The notes beneath the pieces were generated by a model. That model did not search any database and had not been told where the DNA came from. It saw only the letters and a program-made list of their open reading frames with translations. The position numbers were made by a program, and so were the translations under genes. From assembly GCA_011109175.1 (NCBI GenBank), contig RDEW01000003.1, forward strand, positions 1,546,429 to 1,610,428: a stretch of DNA of 64,000 bases. The letters are read 5' to 3'. Below, piece by piece: positions 18,010 to 58,110 of this stretch. Every line of letters begins with the position of its first letter. Position 1 is the first letter of the stretch. The DNA is from Dicyema japonicum (lineage: Eukaryota; Animalia; Dicyemida).

Positions 18010-18120
18010 ATTAATTAAGTGATCCCAGCTTCTAATAATTCCCACATTCTCCTCGAGAAGACCGCCAGCGATTCCAACGTCTTTTTAAAATGTCATCTCG
18101 AATTTCCGCAAAGTAACTAG
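18010..18120 (-). mobile_element. LINE 3' end remnant (GIT-stop family)
   Basis: RMWELLEAGIT* with GGGATCACTTAA at 18015-18026. Confidence 0.6.
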
Positions 18121-18169
18121 ATCGGGGTGTTTTTCTTCAGGACCACATCAATAAACCCTTTCCCCAAAT

Positions 18170-20330
18170 TAAAATTAATTCCAAAGACCACTGTTAAACC
18201 GAAAAAAACTAAGTGATCCCGACGAAATGAATCATGGCTCTCATCTTTACTCGGTGTTTATCCCTTGAGCCTACACAAGTTCGCTGCGGCAAGCACTTCC
18301 TTGGCATTGGTGTCCTTTTTTGTTTTTTTCAATAAGTGTCTCCAAAAGCGTCGGTGATTTGATATTTTTCCCTGTATACCATCTTTCGGTTAGTTTGAAA
18401 GCCCTTTTCTGGGTTGCGGAGATTTTCTGGATGTTCGTATAAGAAGCCAGTGGTCCCCATGAAGTATACGCATTTGAAATGCATGGTTCGATGTACTGTG
18501 AGTAGAGCGTTTTAAGTATAGGGTGATGTACAATTTTCCATAGACCTGTTAGGCATTTCAGAAGGTAGATTTTTTTCTCACATTTGTTAAGCACGTTAGT
18601 GACGTGTCTCGAAAAGTTCATGTGTGTATCGAAAGTCAGACCCAATATTTTTTGCCATTTGCTGAACGGCAGTCCTCTTCCCTCCGCAGAAACTTCTATT
18701 GTCCTGTTCGACAATCTTTTGTCCGATGAATAGAGAGTGTAACAGTGTTGATTGACATCCGATTTTTGTTAAACCACTCGAGTAGTCGATCGAAGTGTTG
18801 TTGTATTATACCCGTCGCTGTTTGGATGTTCTGATCCCGTGAGGCCAAGACGATATCGTCTGCGTAAGCCAGAAGCAGGTCGTCTCCTCCATTCGGCGTT
18901 GGAATGTCAGCCGTAAATAAGTTGAATAGTAATGGTGATAGCGGCGAACCTGGGGTACTCCATTTCGGAATAAACGGGAGACAGATTAAATGTTTCCAAT
19001 GCACACTCTTCCTCTATGTCCGTTAAGGAATTTAGTCAGCCAGCGTTTGAGGTTTTCAGGGATATCTGATTGGTAGATTTTCCATGTTAGATTTTTTCTC
19101 GGCACAGAGTCAAAAGCTTTGTGGATGTCCAGTGAACATAACACAGTTTTCTGGTGTCTTGGCTTGCACAGAAATCCAGAGCGAATAAAGTTAGACAGGG
19201 AGTTGTTGAAGCTTGTTGTGGACCATCCTTTTTGAAATCATGCTGGAACGGTTTATGGTGAGTCCTTTCAGTGATTTTTGCGAGGATGAGCTTTTCCAGA
19301 ATTTTTGACATGGAGCACAAAAGAGAAATTGGCCTGAAGGAAACTGGGTCTACTTTCGGTTTTCCTGGCTTCAATACTGAGCGAATGTTTGCAAGTTTCC
19401 ACATCGTTGGGATTGAGTTATAGTTAATAGACCAGTTGTAAATTTTGGTCAGAGTACCGATTCCATCATTGCCTAGGTTTTTCATGAGAATTCCTTCTGG
19501 ACCATGTGAATGTGTTACTTTTATTTGGCTTAGGGATGCCATTACCTCCTTTTCAGTGAAATAAGTTAATTGATCTTTTTTCGGTTTTCTTAGCGGCGGT
19601 TTGGGTGGGTCAGTCCTCATGGTTTTTGTGAGAGATTTTCGCGTAGTATTTTATTAGGTGTTTAGGTCCATTTGACTGAATTCGTCATTTCCGGATGTCC
19701 TCTCATCCACCTTCGAGATATTTCGAATAGTTTTCCAGACTTTAGATGTTGACCGGTTACGATTTAATGACGTAAGGACCATCTTCCATATTGCTCTCTG
19801 TATTTTGAATTCATTGGCTTTTATTTTTTCGTTCAGCAATTTTAGACGGATCCGTGCTTTGGAGGAACGGATCCTTGCTTTTTTGAGACAGTTTCATTCC
19901 TTGACCAGAGCCTTCCTTCAGTACTCAATCGTGTAAACGGCATATCGTTTAGAGACAGCCATAGATCTTACTTCCAGAATGACCTTGTTAACGTAAGCAA
20001 CCGCCATATAAAGAAAGGTAAAGTTTTCCAGCTGTATATTAGCCAAATGTTGATCCGTAACTGATCGGAATAATTGCCAATTTTCAAGATTGTATATGCA
20101 GGTTTCTTCTTTCCACTGGTAACTTCTCTTGATTTTTAGCAGAATAGAGTTATGATCACTTCTGGTGTCGTAGATGACGGACCAATTAATTGTTGTTGAA
20201 AGCTGTGGTGAACAGAGTGTGATATCTGGGGAGGTTGGATAGTCAGAGTTCCTTTGAGGTGTTCTTGTGTTTTTTGATGGGTCTGATGATTGTCAGATTG
20301 CCAGAATGCGGCTCTCAGAAAACCTCGGTC
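18170..20330 (-). mobile_element. Jockey/I-like LINE ORF2 remnant (APE, RT, C-terminus; internal deletions)
   Basis: SDHNS (APE), FRPISLLCSMSKILEK, GSPLSPLLFNLF, AYADDI, ILGLTFD, ending FVGIT*. Confidence 0.9.
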
Positions 20331-20449
20331 ATTGTTTCTAAAGGTACAAATAAAATCAAATAAACAATAATATGAAAATAAATTATTTTTCTCAAGAAAA
20401 TAATAAATTAGATTTAATTTAAAATTTGAATCAGAAAGTTCAACTTCTA

Positions 20450-23376
20450 ATGTCTCGTTCAAATGTAGTTGTAATTAACAATTATTAAGGGCAACAATTC
20501 ATTAAATGACAGTAATAGTGAAGCCGAGGACCCTTTCTACGATGCATTGGATGCCCCAATAGATGAGGAAGAAGATGAGGAAGGGGAAGCCCTTTTCGGA
20601 GACAATTTTGAGAGGTTTACTATCGTAGTTATCAAAGGGACTACCGATACATTCCTGCTTTGGATCAGTTCGACCCAGATTACATCGATGACAGCGCTTA
20701 TGAGGCTTTGTCCCCAAGATCACGGGCTGAGGTCGACAGAATGCTCTATGAAAGGGACAAAACTGAGCCCTCTGACAGAGGGGCGGCCATTCCCTCCAAT
20801 CTTTTATATGGTTTTGAATCACCATGAAAATTTAGATCCAATGGATGTTGAGAGTCCGCGCCCAAGGAGAGGTCGAGAAGGAATCGATACTACTCAACGA
20901 ATTGAGAGCATAGAGAACTTGGAAGACATGAAAGGGTACTCTATCCGGGAATGGGTGTCTCTGATTGGGCCAAAGACTGAAATAAAGAACAGATTCACCA
21001 ATTTCTTGAGAACCTACACAGACGAGAACAACCACTCTGTGTTTAAGGAGCGAATACGACACATGGTTGAATGTACTGTATTCTGTTTATCTGAGGTAAT
21101 AAACGGTCCCTTGTCGTTAATTTCAACTGGTTAGCAGACAAGGAACATGTAATTGCGTATTTTCTGCCGGAGGCCCCGAAGGAGATGTTGAGTCACTTTA
21201 GTGCTGTATATTTTTTCTGATTACCTTTCCCTCAATTTTATTTTATCGGGTTTTTATTTCAAATTTAGGCGACCACTGACCTTGTGTTTGCCTTGTACCC
21301 AAATTATGTGAGGATTGCTGAGAGAATTTTTGTGAGAATTGAAGAACTCCCTTTAATAGAAGAGATCAGGTCCCTGAGGTGGTTGTGCTTTAATGTACTA
21401 GGAAAATTCATTTAAATCAGTTAATTCGAACGAGAGGAGTGGTGACTACAATATCTCAGGTGCTCCCCCAACTCCACATAGTGAAATACACATGTGTTAA
21501 GTGTAAATTCCTGATTGGGCCATTTTACCAAAAGCAGAATGAAGAAGTCAAGGTGGGAGCCTGTCCAGAGTGCCAGTCCTCAGGCCATTTGAAGTAAATA
21601 TGAGTGAGGTACTTCTCTCTAGTATATTAGACCATCTACAAAAACTACCAACGTCTTACCATTCAAGAGAGTCCAGGCACTGTGCCGGCTGGAAGACTTC
21701 CCCGTTCCAAGGATGTAGTCCTTGTGGACGACCTGGTGGACTGCTGCAAACCGGGGGATGAGATTGTCGTCCATTTTTTACATAGTAGGACTTGGTTGGG
21801 GGTGTACAACCACAACTACGACGGATCCCTCAAAACCAACGCTAAGGGATTCACAGTGTTTAACACGGTCATTGAGGCCAACTACGTTTTCAAGAAGGAT
21901 GACCAGTCAGTGCTGGACGCACTCACGGACGATGACATTAAAGAGATACAGGCCCTCTCCAAACTGCCAAACATAGTCGAAAGAGTAAGGGGTCACAATT
22001 ATTTTAGATTTACTCCACTATTGCTCCCTCAATTTACGGGCACAATAACATAAAACAGGCCATTGCACTAGCAATGTTCGGAGGGGAGGAAAAGAACATT
22101 GGTTATCCCCCGTGTTATTGCAGGGAGTGGGAAACATAGAATCAGAGGGGATATTAACGTCCTCCTGTGTGGAGATCCTGGGACGGCAAAGTCACAGTTT
22201 TTGAAGTACGTTGAGAAGGCAGCCCCACGTGCTATATACACGACGGGGAAGGGGGCCTCGGCTGTGGGACTAACTGCGTATGTGCAGCGTAACCCAGTGA
22301 CGAAACAGTGGACGTTGGAGGCGGGGGCATTAGTGTTGGCAGACAGGGGATATGTCTGATTGATGAATTTGACAAGATGACTGACAAGGACAGGACCTCC
22401 ATCCACGAGGCCATGGAACAACAAGGGATCTCAATCTCTAAAGCTGGGTTGGTGACCACTCTCCAGGCGAGGTGTAGTGTAATTGCCGCAGCTAACCCCA
22501 TAACCGGGAGATACGACTCTTCTCTTACGTTTATGCAGAATGTTTTATTTGGTGGTTATTTAAGGTGGACTTATCTGAGCCAATTATGTCTCGTTTTGAC
22601 ATTCTTTGTGTTGTGAGGGATGCTGTTGACTTGGTAGAGGATGAACGGACTGCCAGGTTTGTGGTGGAAAGTCATGTACGTAACCACCCAAGTTATGTCC
22701 CCCAAAGTGATGAGTGTCCCATACAGCAGAATCCACTTGCAATTGACCAGCAACTGTTTAGAAAATACATTGTTTTTGCCCGCCAAAAGTGCAAACCAAA
22801 ATAGGGCAGGTGGACTCGGACAGAATTTCTCGCCTTTACTCGGAATTACGTCATCAGTCAGCCTCTACTGGAAGTATTCCGATAACGGTTCGGCACGTGG
22901 AGAGTATCATAAGGATATCAGAGGCGTCTGCCAGAATGTGTTTGCGGGACAATGTGAACGTGAATGACGTCAACACTGCCATTTCTGTTGTCATTGAGTC
23001 ATTCGTGTCTGCCCAAAAGTTTAGTGTGATGAAGTCTATGAAGAGAGTACTCGTTTGTGTAACTAGACATTTGCCTCATACCTGAACTTTAGGAGGGATA
23101 ATAATGAGCTGCTTCTGTTTGTCCTCAAGCAGTTGGTAAACGATCAGCTTGTGTTTCAGAGGGCCAGAAGAGTTGGAGTGGCGCAGACGCAGGAGGAGGA
23201 GACATCTGTGGAGATTGATGAAGTGGACTTTGTGGATAAGGTCAGTGTTTGGTGTATGGTAGGCTAGACAAATTAATATTGAATCTAATCTCTTGGAGTT
23301 TTATGACTCTGAATTGTTTAGAGTGAATAGGTTTGCCTATGATAGAAGGAGACGGGTTTTGGTACATACATTGTAG
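20450..23376 (+). CDS. MCM2: DNA replication licensing factor MCM2; multi-exon
   Basis: [23 protein letters not shown] zinc finger, [44 protein letters not shown]. Three apparent 1-bp homopolymer deletions. Confidence 0.97.
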
Positions 23377-23444
23377 ATAATGGACTTTTGTAAACTTTCT
23401 TATTTTGGCTTTCATTCTTGTAATTTATTGTTAATTAAATTAAT

Positions 23445-24640
23445 ATTTATTGAATCAGAAAAAAACACCGTCATAGCAAGAAAGAAAAAATTCAGGTGAT
23501 CCAGGCATCCCTCAGCAGTTTTTTCGTGCTCGGATTTGAAGGAAGTGTTATTGTAATTATTGTTATCGAATTTGCTCTAAAGTAACTTTATATTTAGGTT
23601 TTTTATCTTGGGGATTTAACATCTCTACTTTACTCCGGGATTTTACTACTCTATTTTCCTTGGGAATTTAACTTATCTATTTTGTTTCTCTTGAAGCATA
23701 ACTTAGTTGTTGTTAATGTTTTCAAGAGATAAATTTGTCTTATCAACCCTGACAGTATCAACGACCCGGGTTCTTATGACATGCGACAATTACTGTGTGC
23801 TAAATTTTTATGTTTAAAAAAATTACTGTGAATATAAACGACCATCAACAAGTAGGACTTTCTATTTAGAATTGTGGAAAGGGGATAGATTTGATATAAG
23901 GTAATCTCTAAAAGACGTCTTCGATTAAAGATTACCCAACCGGATAATGTTTTTCGTAGCAGTAAATGTTGTGGTTGGAATATTTGAGATTTCTGAGAGT
24001 AGTCTGTAAGTTGATATTTTAATATTTTTAGGCGTTCTTCTTGATGATATCTTTGACTTCTTTCAGATTCCTCAATTCCACCAGAAAAGTCGGATCCAGG
24101 AATTTCGAGTTTCGACCTCGATCCTTTCTGGTGATCAATTTTAAAGCGTCAAGACGATCTTGGAATCCCAAGTGGGATAACCCTCTCGGATACGAGCTTG
24201 ACCAAGACGAACCAAGAAAGTTTTGAAATTATAAATTAATCTCCAGAAGAAAAAATGGTTTCTCCTTAAATTTTGTGCAGGATTCCAGATGTGATCTGAC
24301 TTCCATTAGAGAATGTTTTGGAAAATTTGAGGTCTTGAAGATATCCCTAGGATTTCTGGATGCATTGGTCTTTAGATGGAATGGTTATATTATCTGCGTA
24401 TATCGAATCATGGTGTTTCCGCAGAATTTTGTTACGGACTTAGTAGTCTGTAATATGACTTCCTCTGCGTCCACTGAGGAAGTTCGCAATCTATTTCTTG
24501 ATTTTAATTGTATATTTGAGTCAAAGATCTTCTTCGTAAGTATCTTCCATATTTGCACACCTCATGTAAACGAACATGCTAAGGAATCTGTGCCCCTGTT
24601 TAAATTGTAGGCCTCATTAATGGATTTTGCTATCGGACGA
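23445..24640 (-). mobile_element. Decayed Jockey/I-like LINE (GIT-stop family)
   Basis: Ends EKLLRDAWIT* with a 3' UTR like the 41751 copy; YQIYPLSTIL resembles RT domain 2. Confidence 0.55.
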
Positions 24641-25640: not shown

Positions 25641-25829
25641 ATTCAAATGTGGGAGATGGCATTACTTTAGTTTTTTTTGTTGGACATGGTTTTTCGTGAT
25701 CATGGCATAGCGAAAGAGCGTTTAATAAGACCATAAAGAACAAGGATGTTAGAACTAATTGTGTCTCTTTTAGTTTGCAGTTTCTATCGCTGATCTGTTA
25801 TTATTATAACCCCAGAGACACAAGACCTT

Positions 25830-26330
25830 CTAATTAAGTGATCCCTGCCTCTCCTCATATTATGTTCGTTAGAGTCTTTCATAAGCCTACAGAAATGGGA
25901 AGGTTTCTTTTTCAATTCCATACAAGCAAGAATATCTTCTTTGAGTAGGCTGACCTTGCATTTTCCAATGAAACTAATCATGAGACAACTTAATAATTAG
26001 TTTCTTCGCATTGGCTAACAGCTGAGGAAAATGTCTAGAAAGCATGAGATCCAAGAAGATGCAGACAACTGTGTCCTTTCCTGCACATGGGGGCTATAAG
26101 TATTATGTATCTCGTAAAGTTGTCCTTTGAAGGTTGAACTGATAAAGCAGCTCTGATTTACTGTGGTATAGCTTGATACTACTGCACTATGACATGACTG
26201 GTATCTAGGACCTCTGCTATTGGTTGTTTCTTTTCTGTTAACCACCGATTTCCTTTGATTGAAGGGACGGGGGTTAAATAAATACCTTCAATACACTTAA
26301 TGTCTTCCATCCTAATGGTTGATATAATCT
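25830..26330 (-). mobile_element. LINE 3' remnant (GIT-stop family)
   Basis: Ends EAGIT* (GGGATCACTTAA at 25834-25845); degraded thumb-region similarity. Confidence 0.55.
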
Positions 26331-26432
26331 TTTGCCTCATCTTAGTAGACTTGGGGGGTGTATTCTGGGTTATTAAAATAAAGAATTAAATAAAGCTTAT
26401 TATAATATCACACAACAAACTTTATTTGACTT

Positions 26433-29474: not shown

Positions 29475-29540
29475 ATCGGGATCACGTGATAATTAGTTTG
29501 GTTCTACCGTGTTCATAGGTCGTTAAATAAAATAAATTGA
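29475..29540 (+). mobile_element. Ultra-short 5'-truncated LINE tail (GIT-stop family)
   Basis: ATCGGGATCACGTGATAATTAG...CCGTG...TTAAATAAA closely resembles 47418-47478. Confidence 0.7.
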
Positions 29541-38199: not shown

Positions 38200-39850
38200 A
38201 CAAAAAATTCTATCCTTCGAGAATGGTAAGCTTTTGACCCCACATCTATGTCCTCAATCACCTCGAACAGAGACGCAGTGATAATTGAAGTTACGATTTT
38301 TGATACAGTTGATCTTCATATACATTGAAATCGAGTCCATCACACAGATCTCTCATAAATATATAGCAGAAGACTCAAGATTGAGCCTTGTGGCACTCCC
38401 CTCTTCATAACAATCTCTTCAGAAATAAATCCTTCACATATGACAAATGATCTTCTCCCTGTCAGAAGATTTCTTAAACAATCAAGTAAAAGTTTTGAGA
38501 TTTCAGCTGCGACTACCTGACAAAACAGTGCATCATGCCAGACATTATCGAATGCCTTCGATATACGACACTTAGCTGATATTTGAAGTTCCTGGCTTTT
38601 CAATCTCAGAGTTTAAGATGAAAAAAACAATCTTCACATGATCTCCCTGGACGAATGCCCCATTGTTCCTTGTTGAGAAAATTCCGTGATTCGATATGGC
38701 GTGTAATTATTTTATAAATCACCCTCTCCGTAAATTTTGAAATTGTTTATTAGACAATAGCCCAAGAAATCCATCCTCGATTTTCCTGGTTTTGGGATCA
38801 TCCGAATAATGGAATCCTTCCAAGCTTGAGGTACATATCCCATATTGAGACTTGCTCCAAATAGGTAACAGAAAACCTCGAAAAGGCAATCCGGACCCTC
38901 CTTGAATAATTTAAGGCGTATCCCGTCCATTCCAGGAGCTTTATCTCGGCACTCCATAATAGTTTGTTTAACCTCTTTAATAATTATCTCCATGCGCCAT
39001 GTCCCAAAATGTTCTTTTAGAATTTTCATACTTGAAAGAGATCAAGCAAACTCAGAAAGAGATTCTTCGGGCACTAGATCCTTTGGATCAATCCTTGAAT
39101 ACTCTCGAGAAGCTCCCGAAAGCCATTAAAAACATCCGTCTCGGTGACAACAGTGCCATGGATCTCTTCAAATTATTAACATCTGATCCAGGAGTTACAA
39201 GCCTCCGATAAGACTACCAGAATGTTGGGTTATTGGGGTCCAACCTCCTGCTTCAGTGCATCCATTTCTTATTGACTTTTTTTTAAATAAAAATCTTTTG
39301 AGTAACTCGTATTCTTCTCTATAAATTCTTGGTCCAATAATCCAGATACCGTCTTAACTTTGTCCGAAGCGATTTAGTTTAAATTTCAGTTTGATTGGTC
39401 AGGGACAGCAACTTAGGAGAAAACAGGTTTCGCAAACAATGTAAATACTCTTCCATAGCACTCACAATGTTTGCGCTAACATAGTCCACTTCACCGGGCA
39501 ACAACATAAAGTCGATAAAAAAGTAGTTTATCCGTCATGAAAGTCCTGTAATGACTCCATATGACATTATTAGTATCAAATTTCATAAAACCCAGAAATA
39601 CATGGCCGACTTTAAATTAACACATAACTTTAAATTTTTGAAAAATATCAGCCTCGTTTGGGTTCGATGAATCCATTGTGAACTGTGAATATCAGTAGAA
39701 ATAGAGGGTAACGAGGACTCCACAAGGTAAAACCTAGAATTGAAGCTTGATGACGGACGAGAGAGTTTAACGACGCCTGGGGTATTCCGAGAACCAAAGG
39801 AAAGAGCAGTTTTTGCCAATAAATTCAAATTAGGTATGCTAAATCAATAA
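38200..39850 (-). mobile_element. Jockey-like LINE remnant (APE plus RT)
   Basis: FGSRNTPG (APE), DKAPGMDGI, WKDSIIRMIPKPGK, ISKAFDNVWH, GVPQGSILS. Confidence 0.85.
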
Positions 39851-41699: not shown

Positions 41700-42800
41700 A
41701 TTATTTATTATTTAAGCCAAAGAAACACCGTCTTAACCAATAACTAATATTCAGGTGATCCCGGCATCTCTCAATAATCGGGCCATTTTTTCTCGATGCT
41801 CCGACTGTGATCCCACGCATTTTCTATACGGACGGGGGTCTTTTTCCTTTTCTCTTCTGAAATTGCCTCCAGTTGCCTCTATGATAGACTCGAGTGTTCT
41901 GGGGGCAATTTCTTTATCTGTATATTTTTCTAGTAACTTTTTTGCTCTTGACTGGATATCTTGAATTTTTGTTAGGTTCGTTGCCGACAGGTTAGATCCC
42001 CATGCAGTACATGCATAGCCTATTGTTGGCTCGATATACTGCTTGTAGAGGGTCCCGATACCTGGCGGATAAATTTCCTCCACAGTTCCAAAGGAAGGCT
42101 TTTACAAAATTGATCTTCTTCACACAGGTTGATATGATGGATTCCACATGGGCTGAGAAGCAAAGGAAAGTATCAAAAGTTACTCCAGTATCTTCTGCGA
42201 TTTCTTTCGTGCTATAGGTACTCAATTTAACGTGACATCAATTGTTTGCGTTCCCATCTTTCTATTCTTAGTAAATAGAGTGATTGCTGACTTTTCGGAA
42301 CATGCATTTAATCGATTCTTGCACAACCATTTATATATGTTATTTAGTATTCCTTGTAGTCTTTCTTTAGCATGTTCGACATTTTTGTCCCTAGATGCGA
42401 CAACTATGTCATCGGCATAGGAAAGTAGCATGTCATTATTATTTATAGGTACGGGAGATCACTCAAAAACAAATTAAAAAGGATTGGTGACAGAGGAGAT
42501 CCTTGGGGTACACCATTGGGTAATAATCCCGATCTGGAACTCTTGTTTCCGACGGATACTTTCCCTCGGCGTCCACTTACGAAATTTGCTAACCATAACT
42601 TTAATGGTGCATCAATTTTTGTCAAAAATATTTTTCGTATGAGGATCTTCCTTGGGACAGAGTCGAAAGCTTTTTGAATATCGATCGTACATATGACCGA
42701 TTTTTCCTGTTTTGGCTTGTTCTTGTGTCCTTCAGTTATGAACTTCATTAATGTTGTTAGGAAGGAGGTTGTTGATAATCCTTCCTTGAAGCCATGTTGT
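41700..42800 (-). mobile_element. Jockey/I-like LINE RT to C-terminus (GIT-stop family)
   Basis: IDIQKAFDSV, GVPQGSPLSPILFNLF, SYADDI, LYKQYIEP, ending LLRDAGIT*. Confidence 0.92.
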
Positions 42801-42929: not shown

Positions 42930-43620
42930 ATTGCTGCGTGGTGCCAACGTTAGTGTTGTGCTATGTGGCTACTTGTTGAAGAATTTTGTTTGTTTCGTCT
43001 GTTCCTCCTTTCTTCTTTTCAACTAGAGTGGTGTCATGTGATCCACTGTCTTAGGTGCCGCCCAGTGCCAGGTTGACATGAAAAGGGATCATTTGCTCTC
43101 CAACACATCACTGGAGGGTTTCCACAACTTCGAGGAATGGACGTCTTTTACCTTTGATGCTGGTTCTGGATGGACTTGACGTGAAGGATTTTGTTTCTTG
43201 GACAGTGGAAACTGGATACAGTTAATTAGTGGGAACTGAATACACACGGAAGTCACCAGGGCTATAGTAAAACTGAAAAATGGTCGTTCCCCCGGACTTC
43301 ATCTAAAGAAATAGATAAGTTCTCAGTTATTTAAAATGGCTTCTGAAATTAGAAATGGTACCTAACGATGAATGTTTCCAAAATGAAAGTAGTGGATATC
43401 AGAAAAATAGAAAGAAGACCGGATGAGCCACGGAAGACCAATTAGCTTGGGTCCTTACTTAGAGACAGTGAAGTCGCCCTTGCTAAAGCTGCAATAAATA
43501 ATGTTAGAAAGAACTGGATTGACAGAAAACGAAGTATATCATTAATTCGTCAATGTGGGCGATGTCCATGGCTGAAACACTTGGAAATGACTCGTTTCAT
43601 CAAAGGCAACTCAAAAAATT
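42930..43620 (+). mobile_element. RTE-like element: 5' leader fused to degraded RT pieces
   Basis: Leader shared with 54675; followed by KLKNGRSPG and LGPYL fragments. Confidence 0.6.
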
Positions 43621-43679
43621 ACATTATTATTATTATTAAAAAGCACTACCGAGAAAACATAAATTAGTTAAGTTTCCCT

Positions 43680-44840
43680 TGTGCCTTATTCCTAATCATC
43701 CTCACCGTCAATCTCTACCATGATCCTCTGTTGCGAGCTAGTTCTCTTAGGTAGTCCAGGTCGTCCGCCGAAGTTAGTCTCATACCAACCGCCGATCGGT
43801 TTTCGTTCAAGATAGTCGGAAGTATTGTTCTTTGCTTTCCGCGGAATCCGGTAGTTGTCCATTGCGATATTTGCGAGGACCTGGTCATTCAGACGTAACA
43901 CGTGGCCAAAGAGGCTCCATCTTGATTTGAAAATATCATCTGACAGCACATCGAATTTGAATTTATTATAAAGGTTTGCATTAGAGATCTTCATAGATAG
44001 ACCAGTTGATCTTGATTACCGATTTGAGCTGAGCTCTGTGAAAAGAGCCAAGACGAGTAATCATTGCGTGTATTTCGTTTTGTTGGGATTTACGGATAAG
44101 TACCATTTCGAAAATATGTGTGGGAGAACGCTGAGCATGTGCTGAAATGTTTGAGTATCCTCAGATACAAAATCCAGATCGTCTACAAAATTATTTCGTC
44201 AGTTTTTTTCCAATGAGGGCTTTGAACTCTCTAATTGCAGCTTAAAGGTAAACAACGAAGAGGACCGGGGATAGCGAGTCACCCTGTGGAACTCCACGTA
44301 AAGTTGGAAAAAAGTTGGAGGTGCATTTTCCAAATTTGACAGAAAAATTAACAAGTTCCATATAATGTTTGCTCCATTGATCCTTTGAGTCTCGAGATCG
44401 CTGATTTGAGATGGAGGCTCTTCAAATATATTGTGAATGGAAAGGGATATCTTCGCTACAATTGCGATGGAGGAGTACTTCTTGAAACTAGGCCATGTTT
44501 CTGTGGACACCCAAGAGTCACACTTCCTGAATACTTGCTCTAAAGTGGTGATGGAAAGCGCCCCGATGGAATCACTGTCTTCTACTTCTCTCGGGATGGG
44601 GCATGCACAGATACCTTTTCTAGTGAAGATTTTCAGACTCCACGTTGAAAGTTGGGGAGGCAGCACAAGTATTCGAGAACTCCAAAATAAGAAATACCAC
44701 AGCCTCTTTTCCACGTACAGCTCGTTGTCGTCAAGACAAGTGAAGTCTTCGGGCTCAAGACGGTCTCTTTTCTAAGATCAAAAAAACTGAGTGGCTGTTT
44801 CAATAAATTTATCTGGCAGTTGTCAAGAGAAACAGGCACT
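43680..44840 (-). mobile_element. RTE-like LINE remnant (RT to C-terminus)
   Basis: GVPQGDSLSPVLFVVYL, RWSLFGHVLRL, DYLRELARNRGSW. Confidence 0.8.
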
Positions 44841-45189: not shown

Positions 45190-47480
45190 CATAATTCTTT
45201 TTTCCATTAGTTGAACATTCAAGTTTGAGGACATTGGATATCGATTTCCTTCTATCCAAAAGTGTAGAAAATTTATCTGGATACGAGGCAATCAAGATGG
45301 ACCGTAAAAAGAGAAGAGGGGGTGGACTACTTACTCTATTCAAAAAGAATCTGAAATGCAGAGACATTACTTCGGAAGTGAGGGAACTTGTTGGAAATGA
45401 CGAGGTTACTGAAGCAATTGGAATCTCGCTTGGGACAACGAAAGGAAGTATGTGCCTCGTGAATATCTACTTGCCTCCTCCCGGCTCCTGTTCAAGGACT
45501 ATGTTATTCCAAACCTATCAAGATTGGCTATCTACGATGAGATAATCATATGTGGAAATTTAAACGCAAAGCATCCATTATGGTTGTCAGGCCGACACGA
45601 GAGGGAAGCTATTGTTATTAAAATCGGACTCCCTAACGATACTGAACGATCCAGCGAAAAATACAAGGAATCCACTCAGAGAGACGGATCAGCTTAACTC
45701 ACCGGATGTAACACTCTGCTCATCGTCGCTTTCATCAAAAATTGATTGGTCTACGAAACAAGAAGCGACCATGAAGTCATGAGAGAAGTCAGAATGAGGA
45801 GAACACCTGCTAGTTATAACTACAAAGCTGCTAATTGGGAATTGTATTGCGCAATCTCTGATGATAGACTGAAGAATTGTTACTTGGACAGCTTCAAATC
45901 GCTAGAAAAAGCGATCAAATACTTTACTTGCACAATCCTAGAAGCAAAATCATTGGATATTCCCAAGCATCGTCTAAACTCCTCTAATGATCGAGGGAAG
46001 TCAGCATTGATCAAAGAAAGAAATCACCTTAAAAAATCTAATCGGATCACATTAGAAACGAAACTCCGGATCAGAGCTCTAAACAACGAAATAAAGGCCA
46101 GAGAGTTCAAGGCCCAGAAATTGAAGTGGAATCGGATTCTTACAAAGGTAAATCGCAACCGTAGTACCGGAGAAGTGTGGAAAGCCATCCGAAATGTTGC
46201 AAAGGGAGAAGAAACTTCCCCGAGGATGACTATACTCAACGAGACGTTAACAATTTGATAAAATTCTACACAAAAATTTCGTACAAAGAACACAGGAAGT
46301 CGAAAGTGCTTCTCTCTTCATGGAGAAAACTGAAGAAGAATTCTAACCCAGTTTACTTCTCGGATGAAGACGTGAAGAATGCGCTGCGTTTTAAAAGAAC
46401 AACGTACTCTGCCGGTCCCGACAACATTACAGTAGTGTTATTGAAGAACCTTGGAGATATGGAGTCGGTTTTCTAACGTCGGTGTATAACTATTCAATTA
46501 ATTGTAATACCGTTGTTATGGAAGCAAGCCAACATCCAGACCTATACTGAAACCAGGAAAACTTAAGGAAGATCAGGCATCATTTAAACCTGTGTCATTA
46601 TTATGGACGGAGGGGACGTGTTTGCCTCGGAGGACTGAAATCAGTCTCACGTCTTCTCCCAAACGGTGTCCCCAAGGATCTCCTTTATCCTCCGCTTTAT
46701 TCAATTTATATCTGGCCGACCTCCCGACACCGGAATCCAATAACGATGTTCTACTTTCATATGCGGACGACATTGTTTTGGCCTCGCGTGATCGGGGTAT
46801 AAAAATGCTACAGAAAAATTACAAATTAACCTGGAACGAATCAACGCCTGGGTAATGAAGAACCGACTCACGATAAATTCCAGAAAGTCGGTCACGTCTA
46901 TGTTTACTTCGGACAAAAGGTTGGGGAAAATGACTGTCAAGTTAAAATTGGACAACATTGAAATCCCCTTCACCAAATGTCAGAAGATCCTGGGCGTGAC
47001 ACTGGATACGCATTTATATTTGTCACCACACGTGGCAAACATTGTTCTGAAGTGCGAGAAGAGGATCAATGTATTAAAATGTTCATCTGAAATATAGAGG
47101 CCGGTACCCACCCGGTCTTGATGAACATTTACAAGCAATACATTGAACCATGCTTCTCGTACGCGTGTGCTTCGTGGGGACCTTCATTATCATGGACTAA
47201 CACTAATAAAATCGAGGACGTTCAAAAGAAGGTTTTCAGAATGACGGAGCGGTGGACTTGTGGGAGACATAGAACCGGACCGACTACTCTGGAGGCCCTC
47301 ATTAAACAAAACTCCGGCATGCGGGAAGGTGACCCTGCAAATTCAGTCAGCCCTGTACGAGCTTGTATGGGTACGAGGGAGGAGCACCGGGAAAGAAAGA
47401 GGATTTTGGCGGAGCGCATCGGGATCACGTGATAGTTAGTTTTGGTTTTACCGTGGTCTTGAATGTTAAATAAATAAAAT
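45190..47480 (+). mobile_element. Jockey/I-like LINE ORF2 remnant with internal deletions (GIT-stop family)
   Basis: RRGGGLLTL, VNIYLPP, CGNLNAKHPLW, SDHE, PQGSPLSSALFNLY, SYADDI, ending RIGIT*. Confidence 0.92.
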
Positions 47481-49719: not shown

Positions 49720-51744
49720 TATGCCTACTTTGGGGTATTAAAACTTTTTTTATTATCTTTTACTACTTAGATCGGATAGCAAATCTTTTATCAAAATAAA
49801 GATGTACCGATTAATGTTTTATCACGGAATAAAAAGAAGGTTGACCTTAAGGTTTCACTTTTAAAATTATTAGAAATTTGATTTTCCTGTTAATTGTGCT
49901 ATTTTTAACTGTTTTAATGATTTATTCTATTAATAACAAATACAGAATGCACAAAGACATTCCAAGTATTTTTAATATTTGATAAAGCTATTAACTCGCT
50001 TTTATTAAATGAGATTAACAAATATAACGAAAAAATATCAACTGGGGGTGTTTACTATTTTTTTGAATTAGAAAATGCTCAATATGCTACTTTTTTTGGT
50101 TGAGCTTATTTATTTATAAACAGGGAATGGACACATTGGAGTTTATTTTAATGATATTGACTCTCGTTTATATTATTCTAATGACCAACATAATGCCATG
50201 AAATTAGCTGAAATCAATCCTCTTTTCAGACCCACAGAGTCCCCTGGTTTGAGATTCCATGTTAGTTGACTAGTTTTGTATTTTATGGATTTTGAAGATG
50301 GGTGTATGAATATGTTTTACTCATTCCCGAAAATTGTATTCCACTACTTTAACTTTAGAGTGGATTTGTTCTTAGAGAAACCCTTGCTGTCCATCGGGGA
50401 AAAAAATCAGTCATACTACAGCAATTTCAACTCGAAAATGACTCAGTTTGAGTATAATAATTGTAGAATGATAAGGTGGAGATAGAATTGAATCTTCCGT
50501 TTATTGAATCACATAATGGAGATCATTTCGATTTGCAAGATTTTATTGCATTTAAATATCCAATCCTATGAATTGTCTGTTTATACGCTCTAAAAAGAAA
50601 AAAGTCAGCGTTCCTCCTAAAAGGTTCTCAGTTTAATAATAAAACAGTAATAATTCTTTTATTTTTCTGACATTTTTCGTTTGCAGTGAGAATGGAATCG
50701 CGTTTTCTCAGCCTGATGCTCAGGCTCTGATAAATCAGGTTATTGGCTCGGAGGTTAACGATTCTTTCAAGTCAATTTACAATACACATTTTAAAATATG
50801 GAAACACGTATGTTTTATATATTATTAATAGGCAAGATCAATCAACATAATTCTAAGTCATTCGAAAGCGCCAAAAGCTGTCAATTCTCAGTTGGTCAAG
50901 GCTACGTCTTACTATATCCTTAGTAATACTAAAATAAAAAACAGTGCATTCTTTGATTATCCTGAATTTGATGATTTAAATGGTTGTTACTCCGGAAATC
51001 CTACTTTGTATAAATTTTATTGTTATTTTAAAGATTTGTCGCCTCGTTGTGGTCATATGATCTAACAAAAATAGAAAACATTTTTAGCATGACTCATATA
51101 TGGTTTATCACCCTTAGCAATGGGGGTTGTTTGAATACTTTAAAATCCGTCAATGGAATTATTACTGCATTCTTTCTTAGCATCGGCTCTTTTAAATTTA
51201 CTCATCAACATTTTGAAATTAATATGTCACCTGCTGATATGCATAGGGAAATTATATTTCTCAATTTTAAATATAGACCAACTTTTTTAACGTAAAAATT
51301 TCACTTGCTTCTAACAATAAACCTTATCTCTCCATATCTCTCGATCACGAAGATGTCCCAATGTATGCGTGTGGAGGTGCTTGCTTTAGTCCTGCTACAA
51401 AAATTAGGTTTATTATTTATTAATTTTGTAGTACTTATCCAAAATCATTGGTAGTAAAACAAACTGTCCCCCAATCTCCAATTTTATACCTGTCTACTGA
51501 TATTAATCACATTAACTTGCTTAAATATGCAATTCATGTTGATTCTGTTAATGATGGTATCTGTAATTTCAAACGTTTAGCTCCCCCCCACGGAAGTTCA
51601 ATTATTACAATACACAGACATGGAAGCATTTTTGCAGATCTACCTATGGTCTTTTGGATCATTGTTATCATCGTCGTCGTTTTCCCTCACATTGCTCTTG
51701 GAATTTGTCTTTACAAGGAATTAATTAAAAATGGATCAAAGTGA
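49720..51744 (+). CDS. KIAA2013: KIAA2013-like (DUF2152) membrane protein; multi-exon, start approximate
   Basis: WFITLSNGGC..., MYACGGAC, SPILYLSTDINH and LPMVFW..HIAL..LYKEL match the KIAA2013 C-terminal pattern. Confidence 0.75.
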
Positions 51745-51826
51745 TTTTTTAATTTCTTGTTTTGTCTCAACTAAGCAAAAATAAACAAAAATCAAGTAGA
51801 AAGTAAACAAAATCAAATTGAAGGAA

Positions 51827-52732
51827 TCACATAGAACATCCAACTAAGCAGCTATCGATCACAACTTGATCGGTAGAGTCAGATTTATCCAAAATTCCAC
51901 GAAAAACATTCAAAGCACGTATACCGCCAATAGATGATAGTGCCTCCACTGCCTCATGACGTACCATAGGGGCCTCAGTTTCGCATTCAGAGCAGTCTTT
52001 AAGTGCATCAAATGAAAGATCATTTTGTAATTGACCAAGAACATAAGCTACTTCATGTCTGAACAAAGAAGAACCACATTTCAACCCAAGATTGAGAATT
52101 TTTACAGATTCATTTGAGTTAATATTTCTTAAAGAAAAAATAGCCCTGTATCTTCTATACAAGGTTTCATTATCGTCCAACAAAATATTTTTAAGTTCTT
52201 CAAGCGAAAGTGATTTGTCAAATGGATATGCGGGATCAATAGAAAGATAATTGGAATCAGAGGGTCCGTTTGACCCTCCATTCTCAATAAAATCCAATTT
52301 CTCCAAGCGAGAGTGCACGTTTCTGATAACTAAAATTATATTAACACAAACTTCAATAAAATTTGAAGCTGAATGCTTTTTTAAGGCAGATATAACCTCT
52401 GGTGAAGAAACACCAATAGCACCTAATGCTTCTCCTAAAGCAATATTAATACAATGAAAACCACACTCATGTCTAGTTATGACATCTTGCTTTTCGTCAT
52501 TTAGATTCTGGAGGAGAATAGGAATAGCTGCAGGATTCTGTGTCTGTCCCAAAACATAGGCACATTCGTGTTTAAGTAAAGTTGATTTATCACAAAATAG
52601 TTTTGATATTTCTTTTATTGTATCGTCCCCGGGAAAAGATAAAAGTTTTAAAAGAGAATTAAATCTTTCTGATATTGGACGATTTATATCATTTACAATT
52701 TTTGATAGAGAAAAGACAGAATCAACAACCAT
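51827..52732 (-). CDS. DOHH: Deoxyhypusine hydroxylase (HEAT repeats)
   Basis: LLKHECAYVLGQ, RHECGEALGAIG, SIDPAYP, RYRAIFSLRN, LFRHEVAYVLGQ, MVRHEAVEAL. Introns at 52330-52351 and 52435-52461. Confidence 0.95.
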   Translation of the reverse strand: MVVDSVFSLSKIVNDINRPISERFNSLLKLLSFPGDDTIKEISKLFCDKSTLLKHECAYVLGQTQNPAAIPILLQNLNDEKQDVITRHECGFHCINIALGEALGAIGVSSPEVISALKKHSASNFIEVCVNIILVIRNVHSRLEKLDFIENGGSNGPSDSNYLSIDPAYPFDKSLSLEELKNILLDDNETLYRRYRAIFSLRNINSNESVKILNLGLKCGSSLFRHEVAYVLGQLQNDLSFDALKDCSECETEAPMVRHEAVEALSSIGGIRALNVFRGILDKSDSTDQVVIDSCLVGCSM

Positions 52733-52823
52733 GAGTCACGTTATTTTAAAATATTTCATTTATTTAAAAATTAATTAACACCCCACTTTATTTAACAAAC
52801 AATAAAAAAGTTAATATATTTAA

Positions 52824-54490
52824 TCAACAACCTTCCTCGCCTGCCTGTTCGCCAGCCTCCTCAGGCAGGTTCGATTCTGGTTGCTGAAACAACTCCGAGA
52901 GCGCCTTGTCTAATTGAACCCTCTGCCCATATGGCATCTCAGGGCTCTGCCTCCTATACTCCAGTGTCAGGCTCTCTAGGGTCCGCTTTAACACAGTGGA
53001 CTGTAGATAGGCCTGGAGCTTCCTATCTACCCCCAGCTGCTTCAGATAACCCTTGTGGTACTTTGTTGCAATTCCTTCCCACGTCATTACTATAGGAATA
53101 ACGAGGACCTTGCAACCAAGCATCTGCCCCATCTCGTTTGCAAGAAAGTCATACTTCCTTTTTTTCTCCACCTCCACAGTCTGCAAACGGTCTTGAGACG
53201 TGATGCCAACCTCTATGATAAGGACTTGGCCAGACTCCTTATCGTGTACCACAATGTCCGGTTTATTGTGCTTGACTAGCACCGAGGTACGGATAACACT
53301 GTCTACCTTAATTTGGACCCTGGTGTTCTCTACTACAGATTGCACCTTATGAGTCCGCAACTTTCTGGTGTGGCGAATACCATACTTATTGCATAGTAGA
53401 AGATGAAGACTCCTTACTACCTCGTTGTGCCTCCACACATAGTCGTGGCAGAGCATGGATCCACATCGAGTGGCTAAATGATCAACCGACATGCTCCTTG
53501 ACTTACAGTGGGGACATGTATTTGTTGATCGACCCCAAAAAATATTGCGGTCTTGCATATACGTGTACAACGCCTCCGATCGAGGTGAGTTGTCACCGTA
53601 TTTTAGCCATATTGTCGACGACTTAAGGTTGACATGTGGGTTGTCCAATGCTCTGAAGAGGACCTTATGAAGGCTTTTTAATTTGATCTTTTCCATCAAA
53701 TTATTATATTGTAATTCGATCAACGCCTTCACAATTACTAGCCCACCATCATCAACACTATAATTAGAAGACAAAAAAGGTCTGATAGTGCCTAGGTGGG
53801 TTGCCCGTGTTTTCTCGGTCGTTATTATGGCGTGCTTCCTAGCAGACACACTTGACCCAGCTATCAGGGTGTCGTGCATTCGCATTAGGATACGCTCACT
53901 TAGTTGGACTACTCCACACAGTCCACGGCCGAATTTATCACGGGGTAAATCAGGCATTATAAGGGACTTTGGAGATTCGGTAACACCCAGATACTTATAT
54001 CCTTCGTGTTCCTCTAGGACTCTTACTAACTCGCTACATACTTGGTGTTAGTCGCAGACTTTGAATAATTCAAATCTAGTCCTATACTCTCAAAGAATTC
54101 CCTGGCACAGACCCCCATGGAGTAGAGCTCCTCGGCTGTTCGAGCATACATCTTCAAGTCGTCGATAAAAAGAAGGTAATTTGTACTTAAACAAACCCCC
54201 TCACAATAACTGGTATTTGCTCAAATCGGTCATTGAGGCGGGGACTCAATGGCTCAAAACAAAGAACAAAGAGTAGCGGAGACATGCTATCCCCCTGAAG
54301 GATCCCCTCTTGAGTTTTACCTCGCCTATCCGGTGCCTATTATAGTTCAGATGAATACTCCACCTATTCATCACAGCCACTACAAAGCTGATGAACCACA
54401 CAGGCATACACAGACTGTGTAGGCACTCGACAAGGTAAGAATGATCAACTGAATCGTAAGCCTTCTTCACATCCACCCACATAGACAAAA
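52824..54490 (-). mobile_element. R4/Dong-like REL non-LTR retrotransposon, 5'-truncated
   Basis: WVDVKKAYDSVDH, GDSMSPLLF, GYKYLG, CPHC..DHLATRC, RHNEVV, KPDIVV, IIEVGIT, EKKRKYD. Confidence 0.92.
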
Positions 54491-54674
54491 CAATCTGCGA
54501 TTAAACTCAAACAGATTATTTTCTCTCTTTCTCTTACACCGACTTTCATTAAAAATTAATAAAAATATTAATATAATTTCTTATATTGGATTTTATTCTT
54601 TTGAACTGTGAAAGAAACTGAACAAAAATTTTATCGGGAAGTTTTCTGAAAAAATTTAATGGGAATTCAATTGG

Positions 54675-56230
54675 TTGTATTTTTCTGCTTGCTTGTCTGT
54701 TCCTCCTCTCTCTTCCTATTAGAGTGGCGTTATGTGATCCACCTGTCTAGGTGACGCCCAGTGCCAGGCCGGCACAAAAAAGGATCATTTGCTCTCCCCC
54801 CACTCCATCGGAGGGGTTTCCACAACTGCATGTAATGGACGTCTTACCTTTTATGCTGATTCTGGATGGACTCTGTTTCTGTAGAAGTGGAAACTGGATG
54901 CACTTAATTAGTTGTTTACTTTAACTTTTTTCTCGGTGTTTCCTGGGTTAATAAAAAATAAATAAATCGGGAATATTGAAGATTTCAACAAAACCAGAGG
55001 ACCGCTTGAAAATTTGCGAAATTCATTACGCAAAGTCTTAGCAAACATTGTGCTTGAACGAATAAAAGGACCTGCTTACAAATACCTACAAGATAGTCGA
55101 AGTGGTTTTCGAGAAAGGAGATCCACAGCTGATGCGGTCTGGAGTCACAGATGGAAGTGTGCAACATATCAAAGATACCATAACGCCACCAATATTCTAG
55201 GAATGACAAGTTAATGGAAGTACTGAGCGGATTTCTGGATGAGTCGAGTCTAAGAATGACCCGAATTCTACTTTTTAACACTGAGCTCCCTGTGAGAATC
55301 GGAAAGACCTATTCAAGAAAATTTGAAACAAACACGGGCACTCCACAAGGAGACTCCCCTTCTCCTCTACTATTCACAATTTATTTGGAAGCCGCTATGA
55401 GGCAACTTAGACCGTTATACCAAGGAAAGACGGAAGAAGTGATCTACGCGGACGATGTAGACCTAATTTCTGAAGACAAAGATGTCCTGGAACACCTATT
55501 AGAAAAAGCACCAGATGTACGAGGGAAATGGTTTCTTACTGTGAACAGAGAAAACAGAACTCACAGAGATAAGAAGGATGAGTAACGTCCTAGAAGAGAA
55601 GTTGCGACAAGTAAAGAAACTCGGTTCACTTATAAGAGATAGCGAAGATATCTTACGTAGGAAAACTCTAGCCAATGCTGCGTTATATAAACTGAAGAAT
55701 CTATAGCTCAATTAAAGAGGTATCAACACGAAAATAAGAATCCTATTATACGACTCATTCATAAAACCCGTACTTTTATATAACGCTGGAACTTGGGGGA
55801 CCTCATCAGCGGATATGGAAAGACTAGACTAGTTTCGCAGAAGTCAGCTGAGAAAAATAACAGGAACTACTTAACCTACGAGAATATCGAGAAATGCTTT
55901 ATATCAAAGATGCAGCACTAGACCTATCAGCTAAAAGTACTGGAATCCCGATGGAAGCTCTTCGGAAAGTTATAACATAGATAACTTTCACATCAATCTG
56001 AACTCCATCCAAATCTTCTGAGAGTTCCTTAATATACGACCGATCCTTAACCAGGGCGGTCAAGAGAGAGAAATCAGGATTTGTAGTGTAAGCAAGCTTC
56101 AAAACAAAATTCCGCGCTTTCTTAAGAATTGAACCCTTAAATCGTATTATCCCCAAAACCGAATATAGGGAAAATCACGGAGTTGAACGCACAAAAAAAT
56201 CTCTGGCTCCAGTTTAAATTTTCCAGCAAA
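54675..56230 (+). mobile_element. RTE-like element: 5' leader joined almost directly to RT
   Basis: Conserved leader, then SGFRERRSTAD, GTPQGDSPSPLLFTIYLE, IYADDVD and LLYNAGTW. Confidence 0.85.
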
Positions 56231-56299
56231 ATCCTCGTGGCTTTCTTCTTATTTGCTTCAATTACCTCCCTCGTCGATATGGAAGGTATTTCATAGTCT

Positions 56300-57975
56300 T
56301 CTTCTTAGGTATGTCTTGCAACGAGCTCTGTAGATTAGCCTTCCAGTTACCTTTAACAGACTAGACTTCTCATGTGCAATAGAAATAAAGTAGTATATCA
56401 TACTTTTGTAGTACATCGTTACGCTCTGTTAAACATGATGCTCTCCATAATTCGGGAGATTGTCAGTCAATAGCATTGTCTTTAGTGCATTTTACTGCAT
56501 CTTAAACTTCTTTGGAATTTATAAGGCTATGACTTTCTGACTCTCCTCTTAGAAAACAAAGGGCCATATGAGACAGGCGCTTGTCAGGGTTAACCAGCTG
56601 TATTTTTGAAAGTTCATCCCAAAATAGGTTAGGAATCTCCTCTAAGAAAACAGTAGACCCATCCTGTTTTTGCAACAATGGAAATTCTTGGATTTACTCC
56701 CAGTCACTCTGTTATAGACTTTCCACTCGGTTTTTCAAGTGTTATTTCTACTTCAAGTGTTATTCCAGTTCAAAAGGAACACAACATTTTTGGGGTTAAA
56801 AGAGATTTCTTTTTAACCGAATAAACTTTAGTCACATGTGTTTCGAGAATAATTAGAGAGTTGTTTGATCCCTCAAGATTCAAATAAAAGACCTCGTTAA
56901 ATAATGCGAACAATGCTTTTTCGATAGTGGTCCTAGTTTATAACTGATATATTGTAGCCTAAAGGGAGGCTTGACCTCTACTGAGATGAGGTTGAGTTTA
57001 TACAAGATAGGTAGATGATCGCTAACGATGTCATTAAGCGAGATAGGTTGTCCCAAGAGTTGAAGAACAGATAAAGACACCAGTGGCATGCTGAAATGAT
57101 CCCAGCCATTAGAGGAATAGTAATTCGTGGTCGAGGACTTCACATCAGTAAATCCAGAAGACACGGATAGAACGAGGCCCTACACAACCAAACGAGGCAG
57201 CTTTCGAGTTTAAATCACCTAGGAGGATCGAGAACGACGAATTTTTATCATATAAAAAAATTCTTGAAAAGATACGAATATGAGCATGAAATTTTCGAAT
57301 ATATCCCTCTGATTTTCATCCAAATTTTTCAACTTGAACGTCCAGAGAAACAAACTCGAGATATAATCTTAGGTTTCGAATTCTTAGGTTAAGTTTAGAG
57401 CAAAGATGTTCCCAGCAACCGAACCAGTCCTCTATTTAATGTCAAGAGAACAATATCCTCAGGTCGAAAACTATCATCACTCTTTAACTTTGTTTCATTA
57501 ACAATTAGTATCAGCATGGTTAGTGGATAGCATATTCACAATGTCTGACACCTTCTTTTAAAGATCTAGCGTTCGCCTTAATAATAATAAGATTAGACTT
57601 CACGCCTATAAAACCCCACCTCTCCAAAAAAAAGGTTTGACAGATTCCATACGTTGAGTCTTTTTACAATATCAACAACAGAGGTTCTGTTAGTTTTTTT
57701 ACGACGGACATTTTCACGTGAGATTTCGAGTCCAAACACTTAACAGCCAAAGAGAAACTAGGTTTTGGAGTTTCCATTAGGTCCAAGTCATCACCTGAGA
57801 CCCAAGAAGGAATCTCTTTCATAACAACAGTGGACGGATCTAGGTTGGACGTAGAAAGAACATCAATACCGAATGGGACTTTCAAACCAAAGTCATCAAC
57901 AAGAATGTCCATGCACTTTTTTGAAGCAAATTCAAATATGAATACCACCGTTTTCCTCATCATAATTCGTGCCAT
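56300..57975 (-). mobile_element. Decayed LINE (ORF1-like plus APE fragments)
   Basis: VVMKEIPSWVSGDDL (ORF1-like), GGV and VSDHLPI (APE). Confidence 0.5.
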
Positions 57976-58014
57976 ATTGGCAGTCGCTTAGCTGAAACTC
58001 CTATATACTTAATG

Positions 58015-58110
58015 CATTGAGCCAGGGGTACAGATGAGGTGGTTGCTGAGAGTGGCAGGGATCACCTAATGGCCGAATTTTTTTTTTCCTAATTTAATGA
58101 TGATTCTTGG
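58015..58110 (+). mobile_element. LINE 3' remnant (GIT-stop family)
   Basis: QMRWLLRVAGIT* with GGGATCACCTAA at 58058-58069. Confidence 0.6.

Follow-up and report, generated by a model that had tools for sequence, protein, structure and literature searches.

A hairpin spanning the stop codon of a Dicyema japonicum LINE family, probably a recognition signal for the element's own reverse transcriptase

We analyzed a 64-kb window of the Dicyema japonicum genome (contig C223:1546429-1610428, from an assembly of 67.5 Mb in 377 contigs) that contains many 3' ends of a family of long interspersed nuclear elements (LINEs). These ends share a hairpin: the last three codons of the open reading frame (ORF) form its 5' arm and the stop codon opens its loop. 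A sequence-only reading of the window had reported nine LINE ends that finish ORF2 with Gly/Trp-Ile-Thr-stop, and a base pair that covaries between the Thr codon and a downstream site in six of them. All nine are present, and each finishes an open frame in this way on its sense strand (18015 -, 18209 -, 23492 -, 25834 -, 29478 +, 40172 +, 41751 -, 47421 +, 58058 +). The motif GGGATCACNTRA occurs exactly six times in the window, versus 0.03 expected from 100 shuffles, and the remaining three named sites are one base off. The stop codon is TAG at 18209 and 40172, and the end at 23492 opens with TGG. The six covarying copies are also as described, with G..C at 29478 and 47421, U..A at 18209 and 40172, and C..G at 23492 and 41751; their loops are 20-26 nucleotides (nt) long. 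The other three are decayed: most of the loop is deleted at 25834, the 3' arm has ATG for GTG at 58058, and it has GTC at 18015.

A covariance model (R1), which we scored on the window copies, adds two copies beyond the nine. These features are listed here, with R1 scores where available. Modules are named by the pair that adjoins the loop; MFE is minimum free energy.

17921-18034 (-): short decayed copy (site 18015) that adjoins the 18209 element; degenerate 3' arm AGTCATCCT; 27.8 bits
18168-18228 (-): U-A-type 3' module (site 18209), stop TAG, 3' arm AGTGGTCTT; 42.9 bits; the fold is the stem, z -1.95
18229-20283 (-): decayed LINE body of the 18209 copy (endonuclease end, reverse transcriptase, C-terminal domain), by tblastn
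23440-23511 (-): C-G-type 3' module, 5' arm mutated to TGG (Trp), 3' arm GGTGTTTTT; 48.5 bits
25797-25853 (-): 3' module with most of the loop deleted and a partial stem; 37 bits
29470-29537 (+): hairpin and tail only (extreme 5' truncation), G-C type, 3' arm decayed; 49.3 bits
40164-40234 (+): U-A-type 3' module, stop TAG, 3' arm AGTGGTGCT; 34 bits; the fold is the stem
41701-41770 (-): C-G-type 3' module (site 41751), 3' arm GGTGTTTCT, (TAA)n-like tail; 47.3 bits
41754-42802 (-): decayed reverse transcriptase and C-terminal body of the 41751 copy, by tblastn; translation ends ...ARLLRDAGIT-stop
43626-43685 (-): weak decayed module copy, added by R1; 20.1 bits, E 0.004
45252-47432 (+): decayed LINE body (endonuclease end, reverse transcriptase, C-terminal domain), by tblastn with pieces of L007 (a nearly full-length copy described below)
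47413-47480 (+): G-C-type 3' module; 5' arm 47421-47429 (GGG ATC ACG), TGA opening a 22-nt loop, 3' arm 47452-47460 (CGTGGTCTT), then a TAAA-type tail; 64.6 bits; the MFE fold is this stem, z -2.4
54888-54961 (+): copy of variant family iii (below), added by R1; ORF end GGA TGC ACT TAA (Gly-Cys-Thr-stop), 3' arm GGTGTTTCC (GGTGTATC in most of the family); 40.3 bits
58050-58124 (+): C-G-type 3' module, decayed 3' arm GATGATTCT; 45 bits

Upstream reverse transcriptase bodies remain at three of the hairpins in the window (47421, 41751, and 18209), and the others are short 3' fragments. The in-frame translation of the body at 45252-47432 finishes with ...ILAERIGIT-stop and ends in the hairpin at 47421. 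At the other extreme, the copy at 29478 had been described as essentially the hairpin plus its tail, and its homology does begin only ~8 nt 5' of the hairpin's GGG. No Rfam family matches within the 64-kb window at gathering scores. Decayed endonuclease or reverse transcriptase fragments of related LINEs also lie at 14456-14991 (-), 16577-16851 (+), 38757-38873 (-), and 62919-63563 (-), with no recognizable hairpin module attached.

The parent LINE belongs to an abundant APE-type superfamily; it is ~3.2 kb long and has a single ORF that encodes a 2A peptide, an endonuclease, a reverse transcriptase, and a short C-terminal domain. The nearly full-length copy, which has frameshifts, is on the minus strand of the sampled locus L007 (~3805-7000). 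A short leader that ends with GDVETNPGP is followed at once by Exo_endo_phos, then RVT_1, ~200 residues, and ...ARTGIT-stop (PF03372/PF14529 and then PF00078, in order on one strand). The L007 element has no ORF1 and no RNase H match. Its closest relatives in a large protein collection are nameless environmental proteins with 33-55% identity, among which just one informative name occurs, 'X-element'-like.

Copies are anchored at the 3' end. Among 30 copies of the commonest families, the retained upstream sequence ranges from 30 to over 1200 nt with scattered end points, which indicates random 5' truncation rather than a short interspersed element (SINE) of fixed length. Direct duplications of 7-11 bp flank 5 of 10 insertions that we inspected, and the 3' duplication starts right after the repeat tail. 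We considered whether two hairpins that lie 294 nt apart in locus L012 delimit a short element, but we rejected this, as they belong to a tandem duplication that carries flanking DNA (L012:2103-2694; the unit of 294-299 nt is a U-A-type hairpin module plus flanking DNA). Two other loci, L073 and L075 (G000:C322:203045-206118 and C312:1749968-1753041), share one insertion, do not differ in its flanks or target duplication, and are 95% identical over 1.5 kb. Likewise, L024:151 and L024:8112 are one insertion found twice, 8 kb apart on contig C1. These pairs are segmental duplications that are later than the insertions.

Across the 67.5-Mb genome, GGGATCACNTRA occurs 2750 times (~1 copy per 25 kb), versus 18 for the reversed control. 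We took 60 loci around matches on contig C1 and 30 around the best covariance-model matches (~0.5% of the genome). The whole-genome model search scored the best 150 of ~51,652 rough candidates and is not an unbiased sample. The sampled loci yielded 134 distinct copies, and the 3' arm could be placed clearly in 110 of these. Alignment A1 contains 80 copies from over 20 subfamilies, including decayed copies and gappy loop columns.

The last 20 coding bases and the loops cannot be aligned between the more than 20 subfamilies, yet the plan of the 3' module is common to all of them. From 5' to 3', it comprises two pyrimidines, GGGAUCAC-N, the stop codon, the loop, N'-GUG[A/G/U]U-YYY, usually GG(G), and a tail of A and T only. 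The stem has 9 bp, with the last three codons (GGG AUC ACN) as the 5' arm and the stop codon as the first triplet of the loop, and two Y-G pairs could lengthen it. The 110 copies use UAA (70), UGA (36), or UAG (4) as the stop, and the loop has a median length of 29 nt (mostly 19-38). In 86 of the 110 copies, the A/T-only tail begins 3-5 nt past the 3' arm, and the hairpin sits at the 3' junction of the element. The tail repeats are TAAA, TAA, AAATAA, AATTT, and others; the unit varies by subfamily and the length varies by copy within a subfamily.

The loop often starts with UUAG (74 of 110 copies, versus 12 expected from shuffled loops, in a statistic that ignores relatedness). In most subfamilies the loop opens with U-R-A-UUAG-UU (A1 columns 18-31), with the result that two or more frames have a stop inside ~10 nt. 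This opening may serve as a motif for recognition, or it may catch ribosomes that have shifted frame. At L060:98-230 (-) (G000:C1 ~2104614-2104746), there is a tandem pair of full hairpin modules, spaced by 50 nt. A repeat tail is missing from the first module, whose 3' arm continues directly into the second GGGATCACC. This arrangement may record a template jump or re-initiation during reverse transcription. A different repeat, starting with ...GGCGTCACCTAGACAGG TGGATCACAT[A/G]ACGCCAC, is at 54726-54790 (-) and 43030-43100 (-) in the window and at L008:2540-2600 (-). It matches the 12-mer only loosely and is without a 3' hairpin of the module type.

There is good support for a conserved, covarying stem on the sense strand, with the last codons of ORF2 as its 5' arm. 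Of the cells of A1 that make up the 9-bp helix, 92.5% are paired, versus 37-57% if the 3' partners are slid by 1-3 columns. The bases opposite G1-G3 are almost only C or U, and the base opposite U5 is G, A, or U. In the 110 copies, the top pair (which adjoins the loop) is C-G in 58, G-C in 24, U-A in 9, U-G in 10, G-U in 1, and mismatched in 8. It can pair in 102 copies, versus 61 expected, and none of 10000 shuffles scored as high. With one representative from each of 16 subfamilies, de novo prediction by RNAalifold gave exactly the 9-bp stem (-10.8 kcal/mol, covariation term -1.0), and intact copies fold into the stem with z of -1.4 to -3.0. If G-U is scored the same as Watson-Crick pairs, then the background is high in T-rich DNA, and only perfect 8/8 stems stand out (42 versus 2.9 expected).

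The stem cells of A1 include 209 G-U pairs and 11 A-C. Since the 209 G-U cells would be mismatched on the complementary strand, the structure belongs to the sense strand, that is, to the transcript. In the largest families, three G-U pairs are fixed in the stem. AT-biased mutation explains part of the asymmetry between G-U and A-C but not the fixation in active lineages.

The sequence-only reading took three pair types at one position as the signature of selection on RNA structure. The covariation is real, but an argument from a single position is weaker than it seemed, as there are few independent events. We made a tree of the 110 copies from their flanks and loops, leaving out the two covarying bases. 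Supported branches of this tree provide three contrasts between U and C, and all branches together provide six. In these U contrasts the partner is A in about half and G (a wobble) in the rest, and it never changes the wrong way. U-A occurs in at least five places in the tree (L041_7374, W_18220, the W_40172 group, L043/W_18026, and L005/L066). U-G relatives adjoin several of them, a pattern of the classical kind in which U-G is the step between C-G and U-A.

Two variant families, which are known through genome pattern counts and the matches listed for them, changed both arms of the stem. Family ii, which we found with the covariance model, has [A/U]GGAUC[A/G]AGG ... CCUUG[A/G]UY. Its 5' half occurs 283 times in the genome, 127 of these with an exactly complementary 3' half, and the controls gave 0 in both searches. 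Its loop is plainly homologous to that of the clade with a G-C top pair. A comparison with that clade shows A-U in place of C-G at pair 8, and a G in place of the U of the former stop codon; this G pairs with a pre-existing C. The frame that is homologous to Gly-Ile-Thr is open through the whole hairpin, with Thr-stop changed to Lys/Glu-Glu, and ends at a UAA in the tail, ~15 codons downstream. The C-terminal peptides are ...ERVRIEELVSLVTLGFWN-stop and ...MIKELVKLVLPLIFGII-stop. Upstream, this frame is the same in two local copies, and in the majority sequence only the other two frames contain stops. As family ii reads through the hairpin, the stop codon is not essential to it; what is conserved is the hairpin itself, and the ORF simply extends 3' to the limit.

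Family iii has GAUGCAC ... GUGUAUC (62 genome copies), and the GTGTATC arm is present in 34 of 43 copies that were anchored on GGTG. Compared to the main family (i), each arm gained one base (G and U); equivalently, three positions changed on both arms. The peptide changed from Gly-Ile-Thr to Gly-Cys-Thr, and pairing was kept.

Metagenomes of marine, groundwater, and other origin contain relatives of the element, on six environmental contigs. The reverse transcriptase regions of these relatives are 31-36% identical to L007, and the sequences of their arms are wholly unlike GGGAUCAC. In five of the six, a terminal hairpin includes the last codons and the stop, with a microsatellite tail after it. 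In three, the final codons form a tight hairpin whose loop contains or adjoins the stop, and a G-run and an (AAAGTA)n-type or ACGT-rich tail come next. The hairpin is CGGGCAUCU-UGUA-GGGUGCUCG in L093 (z -1.6); that of L094 pairs CGCUUCCUC with a 3' arm that starts with GGGGAGG, across a UAAAUAU loop (z -3.2); and L095 has z of -2.2. Two are weak cases, with a ~100-nt untranslated region (UTR), a closing stem that includes the stop, then (CAA)n, and insignificant z. In L096, a 5-bp hairpin lies just past the stop and is followed by (CAAC)n. BLASTP leaves the extreme C-termini of the relatives unaligned to our element, and homology of the ORF ends is indicated only by a short motif, FLxxAG[IV]x-stop in the relatives and LxxxxGIT-stop here. 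The comparison suggests that a terminal hairpin that encloses the stop may be an old trait of this LINE lineage.

Several observations count against a selected recognition hairpin. The G-C state of the top pair is a single clade and gives one contrast, and a sign test on the contrasts cannot reach significance because there are too few independent events. The top pair is replaced by U-U or U-C in one clade (5-6 copies), which implies that this pair is dispensable, and pair 5 is mismatched as U-U in about a third of copies. RNAalifold predicted no pairs from the full 80-copy alignment, with its decayed copies and gappy loops, and the decayed window copies have single-sequence z near zero. In the subfamily of the 41751 copy (41711-41770 (-)), GAGAUGCCG lies eight bases 5' of the canonical arm in the coding sequence and can form 9 bp with the 3' arm, a pairing just as good; this competing register is the MFE fold of that copy. 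In most sampled copies the 5' arm was fixed by the ascertainment pattern, which was the exact arm. No sequencing run recorded as RNA was found for this organism. Finally, no tRNA-like heads (of a partner SINE) were found in the window, L012, or L060, with ~0.5% of the genome sampled. As for the top pair, the sequence-only reading had stated that a single ancestral split per subfamily, with no independent origins, would refute it. This is close to what we found for G-C, but not for U-A, which arose at least three times. The result for G-C is offset by the compensatory changes elsewhere in the stem, in families ii and iii.

On balance, we think that the hairpin is probably a 3' module, of the stringent type, by which the element's own reverse transcriptase recognizes its RNA, in agreement with the overall proposal of the sequence-only reading. 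The position, size, polarity, and tail match those of stringent-type LINE 3' tails and the hairpin-microsatellite of CR1 elements. In the sense RNA, GGG AUC ACN pairs with N'GUG[AGU]UYYY 20-38 nt downstream, and the loop starts with the stop triplet. The 3' end of the element consists of GG(G) and a short tandem repeat rich in A/U, 3-5 nt past the stem. We infer that the element's reverse transcriptase binds this hairpin, as in stringent-type LINEs, and that target-primed reverse transcription would start in the repeat tail at the nicked target. Such priming would leave 5'-truncated copies, each with its hairpin and tail, between target duplications of 7-11 bp.

We also considered that the hairpin might be a real RNA structure that serves another step, such as translation termination or ribosome release, protection or processing of the 3' end, or packaging. 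In families i and iii, as in five of the six relatives, the loop has the stop codon at its 5' edge, and the excess of UUAG at the loop start (74 of 110 copies versus 12 expected) would also fit. However, family ii keeps the hairpin with its stop ~15 codons downstream, and the hairpin of L096 lies just after the stop, so a link between the hairpin and termination is not obligatory. Also, the constant gap of 3-5 nt to the priming tail fits a signal for target-primed reverse transcription better than other roles for the RNA. Such another role seems rather unlikely.

It is much harder to believe that the inverted repeat acts in DNA or in minus-strand complementary DNA (as a cruciform or as a fold-back primer for the second strand). 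In principle either strand can form any inverted repeat, and second-strand priming by LINEs is poorly understood. We rate this idea low because of the G-U excess: with 209 G-U and 11 A-C cells in the sense strand, the complement would carry 209 C-A mismatches, and the stems of the largest families have their three fixed G-U pairs. The least probable explanation is that no structure is selected, with GGGATCAC kept because it encodes Gly-Ile-Thr and GTGRTYYY being an inherited motif of the 3' UTR that is complementary by chance. The resemblance of the C-terminal L-x-x-x-G-I-T to the FLxxAG[IV]x of the relatives does point to some constraint on the protein, and the G-C state is one inherited split. 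This explanation can hardly be right, because both arms changed together, at pair 8 in family ii and with the paired insertion of G and U in family iii, while the residues changed. It is also inconsistent with the repeated origin of U-A beside U-G relatives, with the near-restriction to C or U of positions opposite G, and with the hairpins of relatives whose arms are quite different.

If the hairpin is recognized by the reverse transcriptase, then its overlap with the last codons might be a cis-preference device that loads each protein onto its own RNA. The terminating ribosome would melt the stem, which would re-form as the finished reverse transcriptase was released a few nt away. The layout, which five of the six environmental relatives share, would then be ancestral and selected in this LINE lineage, instead of a by-product of compaction. 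This is speculative and we consider it improbable.

How a LINE enzyme chooses its own RNA has been worked out experimentally for a few elements only. The candidate signal in this family is very small and sharply defined, as it consists of a 9-bp stem, loops that are free to vary, and a repeat tail. There are thousands of natural copies in more than 20 subfamilies, and the three stem variants are ready-made compensatory mutants. As the 5' arm must serve both protein and RNA, the family is a compact case for the study of dual coding, and it permits a test of whether translation termination is coupled to enzyme loading in cis. The motif also marks the exact 3' end of a dominant repeat class in this genome, which has ~1 copy per 22 kb.

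Besides the LINE copies, the window contains two adjoining intact ORFs on the minus strand. One (51827-52732) encodes 301 amino acids with PBS-lyase/HEAT repeats (PF13646, PF03130), and the other (52824-53957) encodes 377 amino acids and has no Pfam match.

The stem-loop of eel UnaL2 and similar LINEs lies within the 3' UTR. Short tandem repeats follow it, as they do in the element described here. In these stringent-type LINEs of the L2 clade (UnaL2, with UnaSINE1, and zebrafish ZfL2-1 and ZfL2-2), the 3' stem-loop is needed for retrotransposition and is bound specifically by ORF2p (PMC4176376). Our element likewise has a stem-loop near its 3' end and a terminal short repeat that abuts the target-site duplication. 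It resembles the UnaL2/ZfL2 3' tails in position, in size, and in the pattern of a variable loop and a constant stem. It differs in that the last three codons are the 5' arm and the stop opens the loop, and in family ii the ORF crosses the hairpin. Also unlike UnaL2, no partner SINE was found in the ~0.5% of the genome that we sampled.

CR1 elements have a 3' hairpin and an 8-bp microsatellite that are hypothesized to be the recognition site for the reverse transcriptase (PMC8665684). As in CR1, our copies are 3'-anchored and 5'-truncated. In contrast to CR1, the repeat units contain A and T only (TAAA, TAA, AAATAA, and others) and are subfamily-specific, and the hairpin overlaps the end of the ORF. 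For R2 and SART1, a 3' RNA structure is required for recognition by their own reverse transcriptases, according to the passages of PMC4176376 that cite them. Those are long, multi-helix UTR structures in site-specific elements, while ours is one short hairpin in a dispersed element.

Single-ORF LINEs with an apurinic/apyrimidinic endonuclease and an N-terminal 2A peptide are known from the Rex1, L2, L2A, Crack, CR1, and Ingi clades, and a 3' hairpin over the stop codon was not described for them (PMC3708506). L007 has D(V/I)ExNPGP upstream of the endonuclease, and its endonuclease and reverse transcriptase are in one frame, with frameshifts in this copy. Our element is like the 2A-bearing LINEs in having DVETNPGP directly upstream of the endonuclease, one long ORF, and no ORF1; the likeness is in architecture and does not assign a clade. 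RTE LINEs, as described by Malik and Eickbush in 1998, reportedly are ~3.2 kb long with a single endonuclease-reverse transcriptase ORF and a very short 3' UTR of AT-rich tri- to pentanucleotide repeats. Our element is similar in its length of ~3.2 kb, its single ORF, and its 3' end of AT-rich short repeats. A 2A peptide is not known to be a feature of RTE. We did not adopt membership in RTE because the nearest named homolog is X-element/jockey-like and the endonuclease matches PF14529. In a literature search, we found no paper that describes a LINE hairpin enclosing the ORF2 stop codon, though this does not prove novelty. Elements of this kind are known; the twist for which we found no description is that the hairpin overlaps the coding sequence, with the stop codon in its loop.

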